DNA of 62,984 nucleotides, filler included, from Pelomyxa schiedti (GCA_020536535.1; 5 parts of 5 records of this genome joined end to end with filler, not necessarily neighbours in it), one strand, 5' to 3'. Numbered from the whole stretch's first letter, positions 5,017 to 29,741 are shown. Numbers and translations are program-made. Notes: generated from the letters alone by a model not told the origin.

Positions 5017-5689
5017 TTATTGTGGTGCTGTGGCAGTGCTGCCGGCGAGCGCTACTGTGATTCTGGCGTGTGCCAGCGGGCATTTTGGCACGCCGGCAGA
5101 GTTTTGTTTGGTTGCGGCATGTGTGCTGTCGTGATACTGGTGGGTGCTGGTGAATGCTGAGTGTGGCCGGCAAGCAGTGGTACTGTGGATCAGGTCTGTG
5201 CTTATAGGCATCACTTCCAGGGGTTGTTGTGGATGTGTGCTGGCGTGCCCCTTCACATTAGTTGTTTCAATCCTTCGGCTGTGGTTGTTACTAAGTGCTA
5301 GTGAGAATGAAGTAAGCTAGGTGAGCATACCAGTAGATCTAGTTTTGTGCCTATCAGCTTGGTACTTCAAGGTCAGCGGAAATAACAACTTGTATCACAA
5401 GGTGCCAGAATACAGAAATACTTGGTGTGCAATGCTGGGCGCCTGGGTACCTACGCAACAGGTTAAACTGGTCATTCCGGGTGTCTGCCAGCATGTTAGT
5501 GGGACCAGGGAAGGCTATGGTGGGTACCAACCGAATCGGACCCATTGTCCTGTTGTTGTTGAGTGGTGATAAGACAAGGGAGAGGGAATGCACCTTGTGA
5601 GATATTGTCCGCAGGTCTGCCACCCGAATAATATATGTGAGCTGCAGGGGAAAGAAAAAAAGAAGCCACCTACCAGCATCACTGTTCAA
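5017..5689 (-). CDS. 3' exons of a hypothetical protein
   Basis: Coding-like ORFs 5354-5689 and 5017-5256; no motif recognised. Confidence 0.3.
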
Positions 5690-5802
5690 AGTGCCGGAAA
5701 TGCAGGGAATCGGCCCTATGTTGCCATGAGGAAATGGAACACAACAGTATGTTTAACTAAATAAAGAAACTGATACCGATGATGACAACTTGTCTTCATA
5801 TG

Positions 5803-6560
5803 TACACAAGAGGCATCAACCGCCCCTGTTGATGTTGCTAGCCCATAATGTGCTCGTGGCTGTGCTACAGGCAGTGGTACTAGATGCTACGTTGGTATCA
5901 GATTACCCACCGACGTGGTGATGGCTACGAAACGCCATAGCCGTTCAGAAAGAGAACAGGGAACAGTAGAGACAGAGCAGAGAAAAAAGAGGGTGAGTTT
6001 ACGTGCCCATTGTGCATACAGAGTTTTATTAAAAACTTTGTACCACATTGATCAGGAAAAGTTTAAGCTGGTAGGTGGCAGGGAAGTAGTGTCTGGAGGA
6101 TGACATTTTTCAGGTGCCAAAGAGTGCAGCGTTGCCAATTTCACCTCTCAACAGTTTTCATGGGATGATTTTGATTGTCGTTGATCTTTTCGCAACTGGT
6201 TGCTGACGCGACACCAAAAATACACGATGGACGGGCCGGGAAGGGGAAGGGGAAGGGGAGGGGGCAGGGGAGGGGGCAGGGGAGGGACGGGAGGAGGGCA
6301 TGCGAAAGGGAAAGTTTCGAGAAACAAGGACTTAGGGAGAACGTTTACTGTCTCCAGCCATTCTTTTTTGGAGCTCAAGACACTCATTTTGGAGCAGAAA
6401 CCACCTCTGGAGGCTGGGGGATGGTACCACAACCACGGAATCAACTTGGCCACGGTGGAACCAAATTTGGATGCTCTTGAAGACGCTAAGGTGCTGTGCC
6501 GGGAAGCACCGAAAATTTCCCTGGAATCTGGTCTTGGTGCCCTGCTGACGCTGAACACGT
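5803..6560 (+). repeat. Segmental duplication, copy 1 (copy 2 at 18533-19320)
   Basis: Direct near-identical match starting TACACAAGAGGCATCAAC. Copy 2 is bounded by gaps on both sides. Confidence 0.95.
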
Positions 6561-19420: not shown

Positions 19421-19627
19421 TGTTTTTCACGCCGATGCCCCCTATCGGCGCACCCCAAGTTACTCGAGCCACCAAAGAACTCCGGCTCGTTTCTTTTTTA
19501 ACTCGTTTGTTTTGTGGGATTTATACTTGTGGGAGACAGTCCGGAGGGTTTATGGTTGATCCTCATCAGATGACGAAGTCTTTTTTGCGGTACTACTGGT
19601 TCTGCTAGATGAGCGAGTGCACACACC
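19421..19627 (+). mobile_element. Left-end fragment (inner TIR + subterminal region) of a second piggyBac-like family member
   Basis: Near-identical to ~22300-22525; truncated by the contig start. Confidence 0.85.
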
Positions 19628-20049
19628 AGTCTTTTTCTCAGTGTTGGAATCTTTGCCCAGCCAAAGAGTAACCGTCACTGTTAGTCCTGCTGACATACTG
19701 TTAACTAAAAAAAACAGGGAAAAAAACGAAAAGAACCTGCTCACTGGCTGAGATGCCACAACCGGAGTTTTCACGGCACCTGTTGCTGGGGGATCAACCA
19801 CAGCTGGTTTAGTTTTGCTCTCGGGTAGTGATACCGGTGGTAAAAATGGGGAGGTGGCCCACTCAGTATCCTTTTCATCGTCAGATGGAACCTCAATAAG
19901 AGCAAGTTCTGGTAAAAAGTAAGTAAATAGTAGGAAAACAAGATGTTTGNNNNNNNNNNNNNNNNNNNNNNNNNNNNNNNNNNNNNNNNNNNNNNNNNNN
20001 NNNNNNNNNNNNNNNNNNNNNNNNNNNNNNNNNNNNNNNNNNNNNNNNN

Positions 20050-21016
20050 TCGTTCCATTTCCGACCGTAACAATAAACATACAGCTGGCGTTCTACATTG
20101 GCACCGAATGCCCGTCTTCTCTGGAATCAATTTACAGCTACTACGACATTGTGTCACCAACTGGCACTCTGTCCACCGAGTGCAACTCGGCCTGGTATTC
20201 CTTTGGGGACACATTCACGACCGGTTATTATCAGCTCTCCAGCTGCGGTGCCTTCAACGATCTCATCAAATACAACGCGCAGCTTCTCATCGATTCCGAT
20301 GGTTAGTTTTTTCTCGCCTCCCTCCCCCTCACGCAATCTTATCCAATAAAATACATCCAAAATGTATGTATGTATGATATGACTCTGGAAACCAACAACA
20401 CAGATTGCAGTGGAGTTCCCCTTTGGGGATACGCAACACTCACAAGGTTCTGCGAGTATCCAGAGGATGGTACATGCGACATCCTGGATGAGGAAACAGG
20501 CACATACGAGAACACAACCTGCCTTGACCAGTCATCAGTCTCCGAGGCAGGAACCACCTTGGAAGGAGGGTGAGTGCTTATTCATTCCTCTCTCCAAATT
20601 CCTCTCTATGCCCCATATGAGATGCCTGACGCAAAAAACAAAACACACACACACACACAAACACACAACACAGAGCCGTTCTGTTGGTCTCACAGAGTGA
20701 CACCTGCAACCTCGAGGAAATCACTGTGATGACCTTCTACCGCGGGGGCGACTGCGTGTGCGACAACGAGGGCGAGTGCTGGTCGCTCGAGTGCACCCAC
20801 ACAACCGACGAGGAGCCAGGGACTGTCACTTTCGCCAGCTTCGATACTGCTGATGGAACGTGTGACAGCACAACCGCACCAGAGGAGATGCCGGAGCAAG
20901 AGTGCTTCGTCAGAGAGGGAGTCACCATGATGTGGCTGTGCTCTGCCCCGTCTCCGGCATCGATTGCCTCTTTGTTGGTGTTGCTTCTTGTGGCTTCTTG
21001 GTTGTTGCTTCTGTGA
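20050..21016 (+). CDS. Cys-rich acidic cell-surface protein with GPI-anchor-like hydrophobic C-terminus
   Basis: Three GT-AG-separated exons; ends SAPSPASIASLLVLLLVASWLLLL*. The 5' end is lost in the gap. A second copy lies at 27297-27600. Confidence 0.7.
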
Positions 21017-22428
21017 GTTTCAGGAACCAACCCTGAATTTCGTTGTACAACAGACAAGTTCCTTCCCAGGAAATCCCTGGATCTCCCACAGAATCAGAAG
21101 AGGGATTTACCTTGGTGATGTTACACTGTAAGTGCAGTAGTGTGTGCTTCTGTGGGATGTGTTCGTTGTGTGACGGCAAAGCATAGAACAAGAATGAGAT
21201 CAAGAAAGAGATTCTATTATTTGTTCTGTTTGTTGTTTGTTTTGATTTGTGGGATTAGGTCGCGATTCTAAGGTTGGAGTGTGTCGGGCTTATAAGGACT
21301 CGAAAAGGACTTGACATCGAGGTGAACGATCATGTAGATTTCCTAAGATGTCAGGGCCGAGCGCTGACTCAGCAGGTCAGTCTCTCAGTCTCGGTGTTCG
21401 TGCTCGTGCTCGCAGAGAGTTTGCTTGTGTATTCTACAGAATCACACAATAGGTGATTAAGGTTTTTCCCTTGCTTCATCCCAGGTTGGTACTTTGGATG
21501 CTGTGGCTGTATGCTCTGTTGGGGGCTCCTCGTTTGTTCAAAATCTTTGGTTCATTGGTCAAAAAAAAAAAGAAAAGGATACCTGTATCTGTAAGTGCCC
21601 TCTCCTTTTTAACAGCACTGATCCCCACATAATAGGTACCCACAGGCACCAGGACTGACTAACCAAATTGCACACTCCCTCCCTCTACACTACACGCTCT
21701 TGGGGATCATCATGCCATTTATGTAAAAAAGAATCCAGTTTCCAAAATCAAATGCTTGGTGTGTGATGTTGGTTGGGGTTGTGGTGGCTGAGGGTGTTGT
21801 TGTGCCTGGTTATGTGTTGGTGCCCTGGTTGTTGGTGGTGCTGTCTGGGCTGTGGTTGTGGTCCTAATAGGTGCCTTGCTTGCTGGAGCTGGTGCCTTTG
21901 TACGTGATGCCATTGTGAGTGGCTTACTTATTGTTGGAGCTGGTGCCTTTGTTTGTGAGGGTAACTTTGTTGGTGCACTGATGAGTGGTGTCCTGTGGTG
22001 GGAAAGTGCTTTGGAGCGTGGTGCTGGCTTAGAGTCCTGTGGCACATATGTTATTTTATGCCAACACAAGGTTTTTGTGTCACAATAAAAACAGTTTACC
22101 TGCCGGCGAGTCTAGATCATGCAACACCAACAAAATAAGAAAAAGAACACAAATACCATCTATCTGCAAGTTTGCCCAGGTTACAACCTTTGTCTTGAGG
22201 TGCTGTACACACAGAACCAGGTATATCTCTTTGCGTTGTACGGCACAATCCGCTCGTTGCCGGGGCGCCTAACGGGGACGAAATTTGGACGTTTTTTCAT
22301 GTTTTTCACGCCGATGCCCCCTATCGGCGCACCCCAAGTTACTCGAGCCACCAAAGAACTCCGGCTCGTTTCTTTTTTAACTCGTTTGTTTTGTGGGATT
22401 TATACTTGTGGGAGACAGTCTGGAGGGT

Positions 22429-23929
22429 TTATGGTTGATCCTCATCAGATGCCGAAGTCTTTTTTGCGGTACTACTGGTTCTGCTAGATGAGCGAGTGCA
22501 CACACCAGTCTTTTTCTCCGTGTTGGTGAGTCCTCTCTCTTGCTGGTGGGCGATTGGGATCAGAAAATGAGTTCCTGATGTAAGCATCCATATCGAAAGT
22601 CGCATAATGTGGTGAATAAGGAGATGCCGGCTTACTGGGTGATACGTTCGCCTTAGCGGGTTGCTGGGGAGGTGTCTGCAGCTTACTGGGCGATATGTTC
22701 GCCTTAGCGGGTTGCTGGGGAGGTGTCTGTGGCTTTGACTGCGTTTGGGGTTGTGGTTTATTGGGCATCGGAGGTGGCACATGAACCAGTGGCCGTTGCA
22801 GATCTGAACAGCGCTGCCTTTTTGTATAGAACATTGAACTTCAGCACCAGGCAATGGGGGTATCTTGAAGCCGTGAGTGAGAGGTCTAAATGAATGAAGT
22901 ACTGAGCCAGTAAATCAAATAACTTCTCCTGGGTGGCCACATCCAAATCTTCGTAAAGTTGTACGTATTCACAAGCAACCTTTTCCGATTTTATTCTCAT
23001 GTTTTGGACCACAGGGGATTCAATTACTTCCTAAATCCAGTTATTCAATAAAAAACGAAGAAACAAACACAAACCTTCCATGGTTTCACTGCTGACTTGG
23101 CAGCAGGGTACTGAACTGCAGGATAGCGCAGGTGGTAAATAATTCTGGCTTTGCAAAGATAGTTGGTTTCAGTGCTGTTCTCTGCAAAATAGCTCAGTTC
23201 AAGCCAGGTCAAATAAAAAAAAGGGGGTGTTTTTTTTTTTTTTTTTAATACTTACTCATTCCAGCCAAGAAAGAAATATTCTGCATAATATCATTTGTGA
23301 CGTTGGTGCAGTAGATGCGAGCCGGTATCCGTGTTTGTGGCAGTGTCATATTAAAAAAAAAGTCTGCCGATGCTTCAGTTAATACTGGGATGCCCTGCTT
23401 TTTGCAGCTGGTCACAAAGTCGCAGATTGGTGCCGCAAACCGCCGGTGATTTCCGTCAAAACAGAGGTAAGTCCTGGTAGCGTCGTCCGCTGTCAGCGGT
23501 ACTACACAGATCGGAAGTAACGACTGGTCAACTCCAGTTTTCAACATCGTATCGACGAGGTGCCCCATGGCGCCCTGTTCAAGGTGTCGGATCTGAAACA
23601 CATGTGTGATCTAAGTAGTTTGTTTTAGAGATTTTTACTGTAACCTTCGCTCAACCTGTGGAAACAGAAGATACTCCACCTCCTCTGTCCAAGTGACATG
23701 CGTACTGCAGGGAGACTTTGTATGTAGTTGCTTGGTGAAACTAGCTTCACTGCCTGCAAAAACAGAAAGGAAATAATCCATTTCGAATTAGCGTTGTTGT
23801 AGATAAGGCAACAAACAAGAAATAATAATAATAAAAAGTACAGGAGCTTACCCGCGACACATACAGCCTCCTAAAAGTGTCCCATTCTGGGACACTAAAA
23901 TATGGATTAACCTGCTTCGTGTTGGTCAT
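22429..23929 (-). CDS. ParB/Sulfiredoxin-like domain protein carried by the transposon (spliced; P/Q/S-rich tail, likely frameshift near 22830)
   Basis: Spliced model ...VTWTEEVEYLLFPQ|IRHLEQGAMGHLVDTMLKTGVDQSLLPICVVPLTADDATRTYLCFDGNHRRFAA fits the ParB-N pattern R-x-L...L..S/T-h...G....Pi.V......y.h.DGNHR..A. DGNHR is at 23443-23457. Confidence 0.8.
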
Positions 23930-24084
23930 TGGTATAAAGGTCTCTCCGGAGGACTTTGTGTCAGTACTGAAACTTCTGGCCCAGTGAGTCGTTTCTCTCT
24001 GTCCATTGGTTTTTGTTGTTTGTTTTCAAAAAAAAACTTGTGTGCAGTGAATACAAAGGCTGTTCCTCAGTGTTTCGGTTTGAG

Positions 24085-24302
24085 GGATACGTATCCGAAA
24101 CTGACTTTCGGAGATGTATCCCACAGGAAATGTTCAGGACACATCTCCGAAAGTCAGTTTCGGCGATGTGTCCTGAACATTTACGGGGGACACATGTCCG
24201 GAACCCAAATCGGATTTGTGTCCTGCACATTTCCTGTGGGACACGTATCCGGAACAAAAAAAGGGACTTGTGTCCGGTGCCTTCCCTGTGGGACACGTAT
24301 CC
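24085..24302. promoter_or_regulatory. Phased array of nine 12-bp pseudo-palindromic boxes (GGAYAC-RT-RTCC-like) between the divergent genes
   Basis: Box starts 24085, 24110, 24137, 24162, 24188, 24212, 24239, 24264, 24291. Box 1, GGATACGTATCC, is a perfect palindrome. A regulatory role is inferred. Confidence 0.7.
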
Positions 24303-24345
24303 GGAACCCAAAAAAAAAAAAACAAAAACCTTTGCTTCCTCCCCT

Positions 24346-26331
24346 ATGAGTACCACTCTTCCTGCGGACTGGTGCACCAACCCTGATCTATGGAGTGACA
24401 GTGCCAGTGAGTTGCCACAAAGGAATTTTGGTGGCTTGGTTGGTCCTGTGAAACTCTACTCTGTTTAGCAGCACGTCTAACACAGTGTTTTTGCTAAATG
24501 TTCTCAGAGCAACTTTTATGCTACGATTTCTGGCGGGAAATATTTGATGAGACTTTTTTACCCATGTAGCAGAGGAGACAAACCGGTGTGGCTAAACGTT
24601 TGTTCTTTCATTTGTGTTCATAGAGCTCTATGAAGGTACACACACGAAAATGTTGATGGGTGGGAGGGATTCACTACTTCTCCATCTGAAATCGAACGTC
24701 GGTATGGGTTTTTTCTTGCAGGTACCTTCGGCGCAGTTCGTTGTGTTGTTGTTTTTTTTTTTTTCTTTTTTTGACGATTGTTACAGCTGGTGTTTATAAT
24801 CAAAAAGGCAGTGGGTCTCCTTGGCCTCGCAGTCTAATTTCCAGTTCGACTAGGTACGAATTGGCTCTTCCCCAAACACAGTTGTCCGCTGCATGCACAC
24901 CCCCACTAGATTTTGGGAACTAAACCGAGTGTTGCACTATTCAAACGCAGCAGAAGTTCACCTCATTGTGGCCTCCAGGTGACTGGGATCATGTGCGTGA
25001 ATGTCTTTTAAGGTACTCACTCCTTTTTAGGGAGAAATGTTACCATTGATGAAGGAATTATCCCTTTCAAAGGCTTGGTTGGTTTTCGAGTTTGTATGAG
25101 GGACAAACCTCAGGGAACTGGGATTAAAGTATATTTACTTGTGGATGAGTACTCTGCCATAGTTAAGTTCGTAATGTATGACGGTGATAACCCCTATGGT
25201 ACTTTCAATTGTTTCCTTAATTCTTATTTATTTTCACATGGGAAAAAAGGCGACTTAGATTGGAATAAAACTCTGAAGTCTCCTTTTTTTCGGCATTTGA
25301 ATTTGACTCATGTACGTTTTTTTCTACAGCCCACTTCTCGTCTCACTTTCTGATTTTAGGAATCCCTGCATCCAACAGAAGCAACTGTGTACTCGCTGTT
25401 GAGTGCTGTCCATTGGTGCCAAGCAACTAGACTTTGTATGGACCGGTATTTCCCAATGGCAAACCTGATGAGGAATCTGCATAACTCTGGTTTCGAGTTT
25501 GTAGTTATCATCCAAAGCAGCAGGGCTGGCAAGGTTTGTTTGTGTTCTTAATGCATTCACTGTATTCACAAGTCCCACAGATTTTTTCACACATCCAGTC
25601 ACACGCAATGAGAAGGCCTTTAAAGTTGGACTTGAATATAGACCTAGTGTGGTACACAACTACCGCTTCAACTATCACAATGTCGACCGGGTCAACCAGT
25701 TGCGTAGGTACTCTAAAGCTTTGTTGTACTAACATTCTTCCAAAAAAACCAAAAACACAAGATGTGCGGCCCGTTATGCCGTTGACCATCGGCAACACAA
25801 GTGGACAACAAAGTGTTCCTGGTCGTTTTTGTTGTGGGGAACGCACCAAGCCCGACTGTTGTATTGTGCAGTCAATCACTGTTGAATTAGTATGAGGGAG
25901 TTTGTGAAGGCAGTATGTTATTGCTTGTGTTTGTAATTTCTTTCTTACATCTTGACTGCAGGTCGTCACAGTTATTGCTTCCATGTTTATTTGTCCAATG
26001 ATTCTTTTACTGGACCCCTTCTCTCTATTCAATGACCGGGCTCCGTTATTGAAGCCAGTGCAGATTACACCAGATAATTGCTATCACTGATAGGTTTAAG
26101 GTGTCCATTTCTTTCCATGCCCATTGCAAAAACAGAGGGAAAGTACAGCATTGTATGCTTTGCTGGTTGAATGGCCGCCGGTCTAATACTTATTTTTACT
26201 GCAACATCTGTATGGTGGCACTGCACTCCTCTGCTAAGCTGTGTTGCTGGGAAAGGTGGCACAACAGAACACACCTCTCTTCTACACAAACCGAAAATTG
26301 GTGGCAGGCTAGCTTTATCCCACAAGTATAA
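24346..26331 (+). pseudogene. Intron-containing piggyBac transposase, inactivated
   Basis: FWREIFDETF..HVAEETNR; NVTIDEGIIPFKG (D 25048); DKPQGTGIKVYLLVD; LCMDRYF (D 25441); RPSVVHNYRFNYHNVDRVNQ (D 25685); RQHKW; C-terminal Cys-rich CMLC...TYFYCNICMVALH...CCWERWH. In-frame TAA at 24921 plus small frameshifts. Confidence 0.92.
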
Positions 26332-27296
26332 ATCCCACAAAACCAACGAGTTAAAAAAGAAACAAGCCGGAGTTCTTTGGTGGCTCGAGTAACTTGGGGT
26401 GCACCGATAGGGGGCATCGGCGTGAAAAACATGAAAAAACATCCAAATTTCATCCCCATTAGGCGCCCCAGCAACGAGCGGATTGTGCCGTACAACGCAA
26501 AGAGATATCATGTGTTCAGAAGAATACAAGACCGTGAGGGTGGTGGTGGTTCCACCAATCAGTTGTTGTTTGTCAGGAGGGAATGTCGAGGTGAATGCCT
26601 CTCTCGTGGTTACAACTTCCTCACCATTGAGGGAATGGCAAACTGCAAAGAGCATTTCAGTGTTTTTTGCTTGAGTTGGCTTCCTTTTCTGTCACCGCAC
26701 CTTTCGCCGCTCCAGCACGGGCCTCTGTCCTGCGCCTGCAGGCTGCTGTTGCCTGCGGCAGCACCTGCATTATGGGCCTGGTTGGGCTCCACAGGCGCCA
26801 CCACTCTTCTGCCACCTGGCTTTGGTTTCCCGGTCAGTTTTCCCGGTCAGTGGTTTTTGCCTGTCGCTTCTTGCCATTTCCGTCGCTGCACCTCCACCAA
26901 TGAAACTCACAGCACCAAACATTTTCACCCACTATGGCTTGCAACAGCACAACCTCTGACAGGTTGTGCACTCTTAAGCACCACCAAAATTGTTTTTGAA
27001 CTTGGAATACAAAAACAACTTGCCTCTAATTAATATCTGTCTCTTTGTTAGAGTGGAATGCAACACAAATTCTTTATGTTTATTTTTACTGGGGGCAAAA
27101 AGCCTGTGCTAATTTCACTCATTTTTGGCGCCAAATAAAGGTCAAGAGTCATTGAGTCATTGGATGAATGCCAAATAAGTGGTCTTACATCAAAGCNNNN
27201 NNNNNNNNNNNNNNNNNNNNNNNNNNNNNNNNNNNNNNNNNNNNNNNNNNNNNNNNNNNNNNNNNNNNNNNNNNNNNNNNNNNNNNNNNNNNNNNN

Positions 27297-28430
27297 CGAG
27301 GAAATCACTGTGATGACCTTCTACCGCGGGGGCGACTGCGTGTGCGACAACGAGGGCGAGTGCTGGTCGCTCGAGTGCACCCACACAACCGACGAGGAGC
27401 CAGGGACTGTCACTTTCACCAGCTTCGATACTGCTGATGGAAAGTGTGACAGCGCAACCACACCAGAGGAGATGCCGGAGCAAGAGTGCTTCGTCAGAGA
27501 GGGAGTCACCATGATGTGGCTGTGCTCTGCCCCGTCTCCGGCATCGATTGACTCTTTGTTGGTGTTGCTTCTTGTGGCTTCTTGGTTGTTGCTTCTGTGA
27601 GTTTCAGGAACCAACCTGAATTTCGTTGTACAAAACACCCAGACAAGTTCCCCAATTTAGTATTACCCAAAGTGGCATACACTAAATTCAGGGTTGGTTC
27701 CTGAAACTCACAGAACCTCTGGAAATCCCTGGATCTCCCACAGAATCAGAAGAGGGATTTACTTTGGTGCTGTTACACTGTAAGTGGAAAATCCACCACC
27801 TATTGTGTGATTCTGTAGAATACACAAGCAAACTCTCTGCGAGCACGAGCACGAACACCGAGACTGAGATGACATCTTAGGAAATCTTCATGATCGTTCA
27901 CCTCGATTTCAAGTCCTTTTCGAGTCCTTATAAGCCCGACACACCCCAACCTTAGAATCGCTACCTAATCCCACAAATCAAAACAAACAACAAACAGAAC
28001 AAATAATAGAATCTCTTTCTTGATCTCATTCTTGTTCTATGCTTTGCCGTCACACAACGAACACATCCCACAGAAGCACACACTATTCTCAGGTGAAACC
28101 TCCGTTGCAGCCCTGCTGCCCCACCCTTTTGCAGCACCCTGGTTTTTTCCACACCTGATGCAGTTGGCTGGTCCTTCCAGTGCCTCGTGGCTGAGGGTGT
28201 TGGGGAAGTGCTTTGGAGCGTGGTGCTGGCTCAGAGTCCTGTGGCACATATGTTAGCTATTTTATGCCAACACAAGGTTTTTGGGAATACCAAAACTCCT
28301 CTAAGAATAGAAAGAGCATCATTACACGGCTGTATACAAGCATTGTGTTTCCCCGGAATGTGCCAAGTTCTTTCACTAGATCAATACAAAACTGTTCCCT
28401 GCTGTACACACAGAACCAGGTATATGAACG
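27297..28430 (+). repeat. Rearranged paralog of 20710-22226 (surface-protein 3' exon, inverted middle block, empty ATAT site)
   Basis: Sequence match; block ~27790-28085 is inverted relative to ~21138-21455. Confidence 0.85.
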
Positions 28431-29741
28431 GATTCACAATCCTCTTCATCATCCAAAAGAATTTCATTTTTATCTCTGTAAATAACTTCTATTTTTACAG
28501 GTGAGTGATATCAATGGGGAAAAAGTAATAGTACCTCTTGGTGTGTTCGCCCTTGGTATCTGAGGATCTACTGGCTTGATTCTGATCCCGATCCGCTGGC
28601 TGATTCTGAATAGTCTCTTTCACTTTCCGAGTCAGAAGCAGTGTCGCAGGGTTCTTCAACATCTACTGATGGCATCATCACCATCGTTTCTACAATCGGA
28701 GTTAGTGCGGGAATATAATTTATATAAATTTAAACAGTAGGTAGCACGAAATGAAATGGTGTGACATGTTGTACCTGTTGGCGAACTTGTTGTTGCGTTG
28801 CTTGCTCCACCTACACCACCACCGCGAATTCCGCTTGGTGGCTTGCCGCCAACAACTGAAGAACTACTGACATTTTGGGGTTGCTGCTCAGGTTGAGCTG
28901 CCTTGGACATAATAGCAGGAGACGGCACAATCACCATCGTTTCTACAATTGGAGTTGCAGGTGGAGCAAGCAATGCAACAACAAGTTCGCCAACAGGTAC
29001 AACAGTCACACCATTTCATTTCGTGCTCGTTGTAGTTGCAGTTGTGTCAGTGGAGTCATTGACCGTTTCTGTTTCGGCGGTGATGGTGTAGGTGCTGTGT
29101 GGGCTTCCCTTTGATATTTGTGTGCGAGGCCGCTTCACAGAACACTGGCGGAGGCTAACCAGCGGCGTCTCGAAGTGAGTCTGCGTGATACGATACCGAC
29201 CGCTTGGCCGCACGTGGGAAGTACGGCCGAGTTCGTGGTCCTCCCGGCTGGGTCACCCATTGTTGTTTTATTTTTGTCTATCTTTCTATTTCCAGCGATA
29301 GAAATTAGAAATAAGAAACTTTTCAAAAAAGAGAACATTCCTCAGAGTACTCTGGTATTAGTTGGCGTCTAAATGCGATACCGGAGCCCTCGTCCCAAAC
29401 CACCAGTGAGGCACTCTGTGGCTCTGACACACCTGCAACTATTGGTACACCACACACTGTCATATCACCCCAGTCAGCTTCCACACCCTCTTCAAAGGCA
29501 CTACTACGTTGTTGACTTTTCTATGAGAGTCTTCAGGAATATTTCTTGTCAGTTCAAACGACAGATTTGCAGTGGGTGCAATCCATTGGGGAGGACAGGG
29601 TATTCCTCATTGTGAAGACAACAAGCCCAGAAGATGCATCCNNNNNNNNNNNNNNNNNNNNNNNNNNNNNNNNNNNNNNNNNNNNTTAATTAATTAANNN
29701 NNNNNNNNNNNNNNNNNNNNNNNNNNNNNNNNNNNNNNNNN

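Follow-up and report, generated by a model that had tools for sequence, protein, structure and literature searches.

A two-gene DNA transposon of the piggyBac superfamily, in a copy that is decayed and probably non-autonomous, is likely to occupy positions 22227-26504 of the DNA analyzed here, a stretch of 62,984 nucleotides (filler included) from the free-living anaerobic archamoeba Pelomyxa schiedti (the window; all coordinates are positions in it unless they are marked as L001 or contig positions). The copy lies in a piece of 10,221 bases (19421-29641) that corresponds to contig JAHLWZ010000784.1 of assembly GCA_020536535.1, and a second copy of the element is carried by contig JAHLWZ010001597.1 of the same species (L001 from here on). 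The plus strand holds a disrupted transposase gene and the minus strand a spliced accessory gene (the cargo gene), placed head-to-head around an array of short palindromes, an arrangement that the initial annotation of this DNA had described. That annotation had also read a ParB/Srx N-terminal domain in the cargo protein and had put the element forward as a candidate eukaryotic transposon-borne ParB system, of which the two-gene element and its array stand, whereas the ParB part found no support in the searches described below.

The element is delimited by two inverted repeat arms found in a repeat search (22223-22418 and 26313-26508), which are 196 nt long and 95% complementary; since each arm has the ATAT flank as its four outermost bases, the element proper spans 22227-26504, and the unit bounded by terminal inverted repeats (TIRs) that had been proposed is confirmed. 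The left TIR (22227-22418, plus strand) starts CTCTTTGCGTTGTACGGCACAATCC and is 95% identical to the end seen in L001, the right one (26313-26504, minus strand) holds the last transposase codons and the stop, and the element termini read CTCTTTGCGTTGTACGG. The presumed target-site duplication, ATAT, abuts the element on its left (22223-22226) and on its right (26505-26508), as well as the end present in L001 (L001 3917-3920), that is, all three ends seen, from two insertions, and a paralogous flank (28400-28425) likewise ends in ATAT. The TTAA duplication of the piggyBac superfamily was found at none of these three ends.

A survey of 157 piggyBac-like elements described a TTAA target, end repeats of 12-19 bp (50 bp in one exceptional element) and a single open reading frame (ORF); it mentions ATAT only as a rarity confined to individual copies, and gives Entamoeba invadens as the amoebozoan host (PMC5381638). 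With such elements (piggyBac of T. ni, piggyBat and that of E. invadens) the present one shares a DDE_Tnp_1_7 core with the first Asp in 'TIDE', a Cys-rich C-terminus, a four-base, AT-only palindromic flank and inverted-repeat ends. It differs from them in having ATAT instead of TTAA, repeats of 196 nt instead of 12-19, ends that start CTC and not with the usual CCC-type sequence, a transposase gene split by several introns, a central palindrome array and, in place of the single ORF, a second gene, which is multi-exon and present in two copies. The layout thus departs from the published picture of the superfamily, as had been claimed (PMC5381638).

The transposase gene (24346-26331, plus strand) is multi-exon, and its family was established by Pfam and PDB matches. 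The exon at 25012-25350 matches DDE_Tnp_1_7 (PF13843) with 28.0 bits (cut-off 22.4, E value 1.7e-6, profile positions 125-180), and Pelo_9865, a spliced fragment that is the only GenBank gene on JAHLWZ010000784.1 (contig 5676-6475, window 25096-25895), widens the match to profile positions 147-241 (E value 2e-4, just below the cut-off). The best PDB match of the same exon is T. ni piggyBac (6x67, residues 262-302), whose GAHLTIDE aligns with GRNVTIDE here, so that the first catalytic Asp is the equivalent of D268. The second (in CMDRYF) and the third (in YHNVDRVNQ) catalytic Asp are motif-level readings only, and PDB sequence searches with the exons bearing them gave no match. The last exon has its best, although weak (E value 0.018), PDB match in residues 532-574 of the piggyBat transposase, within the C-terminal Cys-rich domain and with the Cys/His pattern aligned. 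Because the core and the Cys-rich matches keep the same order along both proteins, the assignment to the piggyBac family is sound. The stop codon (26329-26331) falls within the right repeat.

This gene is disrupted in the window. A path search between conserved blocks found no in-frame route through GT-AG introns from LLCYDFWREIF to VAEETNR, two blocks that form a single open frame in L001, and three lesions were identified by comparison with that copy: a frame-breaking loss of one nucleotide near 24553 (six T here, seven there), an in-frame deletion of 24 nt near 24807, and a frame-shifting deletion of 56 nt near 24952, which takes out ...DNPGD.IASIHWLVDFLNW, the block that precedes ...KFTSLWPPG/RNVTIDE. 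The L001 transposase is broken otherwise, by an in-frame TGA within that same DNPGD block and by the loss of about 500 bp of the core. Since the lesions differ between the copies, both descend from an intact two-gene ancestor. As judged from these predicted genes, neither copy is able to supply transposase, and the window copy could be mobile only if an intact copy elsewhere supplied it. The transposase of the initial annotation is thus of the piggyBac family, but its gene is not intact in the window, and of the proposed DDD triad only the first Asp is aligned to a solved structure. The peptide DWDHVRECL, considered as transposase coding sequence, was rejected, as it lies in an intron according to the comparison with L001.

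Between the two gene starts (24085-24302) lie nine palindromes of 12 bp, recognized by motif scan, of the form GG-N8-CC, which start at 24085, 24110, 24137, 24162, 24188, 24212, 24239, 24264 and 24291. Their spacings (25, 27, 25, 26, 24, 27, 25 and 27 bp) nearly alternate between 25 and 27, with about 52 bp per pair, an alternation by which every other site is in phase on the DNA helix (52 bp, about five turns); the nine phased palindromes said to fill the intergenic DNA are thus verified, with a spacing of 24-27 bp. The L001 array has ten sites with an identical, alternating spacing pattern, and the nineteen sites together give the consensus GGAnAYRTnTCC, which hardly varies at the outer GGA/TCC and at the inner A/T. 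In the spacers, two sequences and their reverse complements occur in turn, so that the array forms a stack of nested inverted repeats, and as a single strand it folds at -118.7 kcal/mol (z = -9.6 against shuffles); it may have a role as a hairpin RNA or as a cruciform. The array is 44 bp away from the transposase ATG on one side and about 200 bp from the predicted cargo ATG on the other, upstream of both. Since the 10.2-kb piece, end repeats included, has no further site that differs from GGACACGTGTCC by three mismatches or fewer, the array is not a chance feature.

What binds these palindromes could be the transposase or a host dimeric factor (recognizing an ACGT or CAYRTG core), and not the cargo protein, the array then serving as a strong bidirectional promoter or enhancer; this is possible, although we would not favor it, and it is compatible with the two-gene transposon proposed here. 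The Cys-rich domains of piggyBac transposases bind short repeated motifs in the element. In keeping with such a binder, the transposase has a piggyBat-like C-terminal Cys-rich domain, the palindromes have an AYRT core and the last of them is close to the transposase ATG, and library scans of the cargo protein gave no DNA-binding domain. The motif is, however, absent from the end repeats and from the rest of the piece, where transposase-binding sites would be expected, and its absence from the end repeats also argues mildly against a role of the array in end recognition.

The cargo gene consists, in the simplest model, of five predicted exons with about 288 codons, joined in frame by four GT-AG introns of 98, 45, 74 and 44 nt. 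Exon 1 (23852-23885, minus strand) is predicted to encode MGHF, a stop and EAVCVAG, its codon 5 being TAG here and TAT in L001. Exon 2 (23656-23753, minus strand), which encodes (G)SEASFTKQLHTKSPCSTHVTWTEEVEYLLFPQ, is bounded by TTTTTGCAG upstream and GTTGAG downstream and carries five substitutions with respect to L001 (two synonymous, three not). Exon 3 (23256-23610, minus strand) is an open frame of 118 codons with a ParB/Srx-like motif (FQIRHLEQ...PICVVP...YLCFDGNHRRFAA...IPVL), and its protein is 98% identical to residues 109-227 of KAH3723271.1, the GenBank model of the second copy ('hypothetical protein Pelo_18026'). Exon 4 (23075-23181, minus strand), encoding KNSTETNYLCKARIIYHLRYPAVQYPAAKSAVKPWK, is bounded by TTTTGCAG and GTTTGT and has the same splice junctions as KAH3723271.1; exon 5 (22758-23030, minus strand; EVIESPVVQNM...SCATSDAQ, then TAA) follows an acceptor that reads ...GGATTTAG and is 100% identical to L001. 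The peptides quoted in the initial annotation are all present in the sequence. An alternative start at ATG 23929 (MTNTKQ...) was rejected, as it has no in-frame join to exon 2.

The GenBank model of the second copy, in which the internal splice junctions were predicted independently, extends further on both sides: upstream through the palindrome array (L001 1520-1700, MCRTHRRKSVSEMYPTRNVQDTSPKVSFGDVS...) and downstream through doubtful short introns, and both the array-spanning N-terminal part and the downstream short-intron part are probably prediction artefacts. In the simplest model the gene ends at the TAA at 22758, 340 bp from the left repeat, and it reaches the repeat only in an extended, GenBank-style model; of the statement that the 3' ends of both genes run up to or into the TIRs, the part on the transposase is borne out by its stop codon, whereas the cargo gene, in the simplest model, falls short by that distance. 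The region in between (22429-22757, minus strand), defined by comparison with L001, would be either untranslated or made of extra C-terminal exons as in the GenBank model; it contains a shared terminal ORF that reads ...NTEKKTGVCTRSSSRTSSTAKKTSASDEDQP and ends at 22432, followed by a stop at 22429-22431. Some 360 bp of the cargo 3' region (L001 3257-3616, partly present in a truncated third copy) are missing here, with a deletion junction near 22527, and the cargo gene of the window copy is probably damaged too. Downstream of the cargo stop there is also a tandem duplication of 51 bp (22630-22731; 92-95% identical and kept in L001), which in another frame corresponds to a 17-residue repeat of the PQQPAKAN type.

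Besides the window copy, L001 contains, ordered and oriented as in the window, a transposase remnant, the array, the cargo gene, an end repeat and ATAT, with 91-95% identity. The third copy (19421-19949, plus strand), recognized by a direct repeat and by its match to L001 and truncated both at the start of the contig and by an N gap, comprises the inner left repeat and the cargo 3' region: 19421-19647 is 99% identical to 22300-22526, and 19829-19949 is 100% identical to L001 3283-3403. As the layout recurs in L001 and the cargo 3' region in the third copy, the two-gene arrangement is a family trait and not a one-off capture. That the cargo is an integral gene of the element, as had been proposed, is further upheld by a HMMER scan of representative proteins, in which the host proteome showed no paralogue from which the gene might have been captured. 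Metagenome scans with the cargo exon and with a 25-nt element terminus gave no match.

Several points weigh against the interpretation of this locus as a two-gene transposon. The cargo and transposase genes are predicted from genomic sequence; the 5' end of the cargo gene is undefined, and its only predicted start is followed by the TAG at codon 5 in the window copy; the copies examined amount to two and a half, none of them with an intact transposase; and the ATAT target rests on two insertions. In addition, the body of the cargo gene (23500-22530) differs from L001 2284-3256 at only 3 of 970 positions, introns included (about 99.7% identity), and the end repeats, the cargo 5' part and the transposase differ by 5-9% between the same two copies. 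This mosaic of identity suggests gene conversion, recent recombination or assembly collapse, with no apparent signal of selection left: the coding differences in the cargo gene are seven (three synonymous, four non-synonymous), too few for the ratio of non-synonymous to synonymous substitution (dN/dS), which had been suggested as a test, to carry such a signal.

Some of these observations would also fit a minus-strand 'gene' that is not a functional protein gene, but a decayed captured fragment or a prediction artefact, with the array acting as a DNA or RNA structure, for instance as a hairpin source of silencing small RNAs or as a recombination-prone cruciform. We regard this as unlikely. The early TAG, the lack of evidence of purifying selection and the array, which folds far better than its shuffles, are in line with it, as are the indels by which the 3' region varies among copies, the lack of a GenBank annotation of the cargo gene on JAHLWZ010000784.1, and the lack of any relative outside P. 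schiedti among 1.84 billion representative or 5.8 billion clustered proteins. On the other hand, one reading frame runs across all five exons once the four canonical introns are removed, and the guanine-plus-cytosine (GC) content clearly falls in every intron (about 0.29-0.34 in introns against 0.44-0.49 in exons), the GC content by codon position (0.51/0.39/0.51) is typical of coding sequence and resembles that of the transposase exons, the internal exon structure was independently predicted in the second copy, and a capture would have had no paralogue in the host proteome as its source.

The nature of the accessory protein was approached through its resemblance to ParB. Exon 3 can be read as a strand of hydrophobic residues and a helix that closes with G, followed by PICVVP, TYLCFDGNHRRFAA and GIPVL, akin to the ParB/Srx core, and a nucleotide-binding motif of the GxxR/DGxHR type after a beta strand can be read from the sequence as YLCFDGNHRRFAA, although this motif alone does not establish membership. 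No family of the ParB clan matched the cargo exon or the longer GenBank protein in Pfam, NCBIfam, PHROGs or PADLOC at E values up to 10, scans in which the HMMER filters may conceal very weak matches; the hits that did appear (AEP-TOTE at 0.18, Cas5fv at 0.079 and one PHROG at 0.22) were rejected as noise. Among PDB sequences there was no ParB or sulfiredoxin chain, the only match being a lyase at an E value of 0.75. The HMMER scan of 1.84 billion representative proteins returned only KAH3723271.1 and four low-complexity repeat proteins that were regarded as spurious, and a word-indexed search of 5.8 billion clustered proteins with KAH3723271.1 returned only itself. When 72,556 plasmids and 50,697 phages, a collection rich in parB, were searched in translation, a single match appeared at an E value of 0.8; it was rejected because it falls on the antisense strand of true genes of a Rhizobium plasmid.

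Direct comparison with a known ParB was equally negative. The cargo protein had no BLASTP match to the ParB N-domain of YubM from the F plasmid, and it obtained no score from a custom profile of the YubM family searched without filters, a narrow profile that covers one ParB subfamily; it was built from 12 uninterrupted relatives, a protein search seeded with F YubM having given near-identical proteins only and a genome scan 19 relatives with 39-100% identity. AlphaFold2 was run without an alignment on residues 79-335 and 97-230 of KAH3723271.1, and the models (predicted local distance difference test, pLDDT, of 36.9 and 39.6) are unusable, poor because the protein has no relatives and hence no alignment. 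With the low-confidence model of 97-230, Foldseek found nothing in the PDB at an E value of 0.001 or better (the best, at 0.84, being noise). The order of elements in these models, strand-helix-strand-strand-helix-strand, is compatible with ParB/Srx but common. Library scans detected no helix-turn-helix or other DNA-binding family in the remaining cargo protein, in agreement with the initial annotation, which had recognized no helix-turn-helix domain either. The ParB/Srx domain that it had assigned, and for which it had recommended Pfam and AlphaFold with Foldseek as a check, was accordingly detected by no profile, pairwise or structural method and comes down to a short-motif resemblance; the cargo protein is without assignable function. 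On the motif and on precedent, a ParB/Srx fold is conceivable but rather doubtful.

Comparison with bacterial ParB-parS and its cytidine triphosphate (CTP) clamp, made directly with F SopB and YubM, gives a likeness at motif level only (a P-I-x-V strand followed by DG-x-HR-x-x-AA), together with the presence of palindromic sites beside the gene. There is here no profile, pairwise or structural similarity, no helix-turn-helix, no ENxxR box and no ParA partner, and no site of the parS type was found in the array: the sites are of 12 bp (GGAnAYRTnTCC) and arrayed every 25-27 bp, unlike the 16-bp parS in length and sequence. A parallel in terms of organization is found in PIF/Harbinger elements, whose autonomous members need a second element-encoded protein beside the transposase, although that partner is a Myb/SANT-like DNA-binding protein, the superfamily is another and the target is TWA; to our knowledge, these elements have no central palindrome array. 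In the alga Ectocarpus, the transposon Sola1-1_Ec32 carries, on the strand opposite to the transposase, an accessory gene whose product is a fusion of a ParB-like domain and a DNA methyltransferase (PMC12477816). This is also a cut-and-paste DNA transposon with an accessory gene opposite the transposase, but its protein has 1104 amino acids, a recognizable ParB-like domain and an N4-C/N6-A DNA methyltransferase fusion, and the element, of 21.5 kb, belongs to another superfamily, whereas the protein found here has about 290 amino acids, no detectable domain and no methyltransferase. Because of this precedent, a transposon-borne ParB in eukaryotes would not be entirely new (PMC12477816).

It seems improbable, then, that the minus-strand protein is a nucleotide binder of the ParB/Srx fold that loads on the array as ParB does on parS and that regulates, bridges, protects or partitions the element. 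The exon does present the order and the key residues of the ParB/Srx core (FQIRHL, a helix, TG, PICVVP, TRTYLCFDGNHRRFAA and GIPVL), in the pattern of a hydrophobic strand, a helix ending in G, a P-I-x-V strand and Y-x-x-x-DG-x-HR-x-x-AA, the low-confidence AlphaFold models give a matching order of strands and helices, and a phased array of dimer-type palindromes adjoins the gene. Against this stand the absence of a match in Pfam, NCBIfam, PHROGs, PADLOC, the PDB, plasmid and phage DNA and the BLASTP and profile comparisons with YubM, models that are unusable with Foldseek results at noise level, the lack of a recognized helix-turn-helix and of a box III (ENxxR) motif, palindromes unlike parS, and the methyltransferase fusion of the algal precedent, absent here. 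As the proposed ParB loading mechanism depends on the ParB/Srx assignment, which is unsupported, the mechanism is not supported either.

For the two-gene piggyBac-superfamily transposon itself, mobility would follow the cut-and-paste route of piggyBac, in which a palindromic tetranucleotide made up of A and T only is cut with a four-base stagger, and the target would have changed from TTAA to ATAT. The simplest role for the array would be to control both genes as one bidirectional region to which a dimeric DNA-binding factor binds; for this factor the accessory protein, the Cys-rich domain of the transposase and a host factor are candidates, and the accessory protein may be a lineage-specific helper or regulator of the element. 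A bolder combination, in which an archamoebal piggyBac lineage had both retargeted its transposase from TTAA to ATAT and recruited a highly diverged nucleotide switch of the ParB/Srx type that loads on its own palindrome array, as a eukaryotic, transposon-borne counterpart of ParB-parS controlling transcription, end pairing or silencing, appears very unlikely.

Elements of the piggyBac type are widely used as genetic tools. If the present one represents a true lineage, with a second gene, long repeats, another tetranucleotide target and a palindrome array, the structure of the superfamily would be more varied than the surveyed elements suggest, and the lineage would be a natural case for the study of changes in piggyBac target choice. 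Should the accessory protein turn out to act on the array as a factor of the ParB type, the ParB-like accessory proteins recently noted in algal transposons would gain a further member, and a recurrent way for eukaryotic transposons to recognize their own DNA would be suggested.

The DNA around the element presents some further features. No Rfam match was found within the piece. The sequence to the left of the element (20713-21455 and 21995-22226) is duplicated about 6.2-6.6 kb downstream (27297-28425), part of it direct and part inverted, in pieces of 300 nt (98%), 216 nt (98%, inverted) and 73 nt (100%, inverted). The homology ends exactly at the ATAT of the insertion site (22201-22226 equals 28400-28425), and the sequence beyond 28425 differs from the right flank of the element; the duplication could be a segmental rearrangement or could reflect haplotypes scaffolded across N gaps. 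Within the duplicated region, about 100 extra bases at 27593-27715, with respect to the paralogue at 21009-21043, form a perfect 24-nt inverted repeat of adjacent sequence, which an inverted duplication or the insertion of a small foldback element could explain. A predicted host gene at 20052-21013 has three exons separated by short GT-AG introns; its product is rich in Cys and has a hydrophobic tail at the C-terminus, and its last exon is duplicated at 27297-27596. Finally, a long, near-perfect hairpin lies outside the element at 28743-29027, with arms at 28743-28821 and 28950-29027 that match over 23 nt at 100% and 55 nt at 93% and that are separated by a loop of 128 nt.

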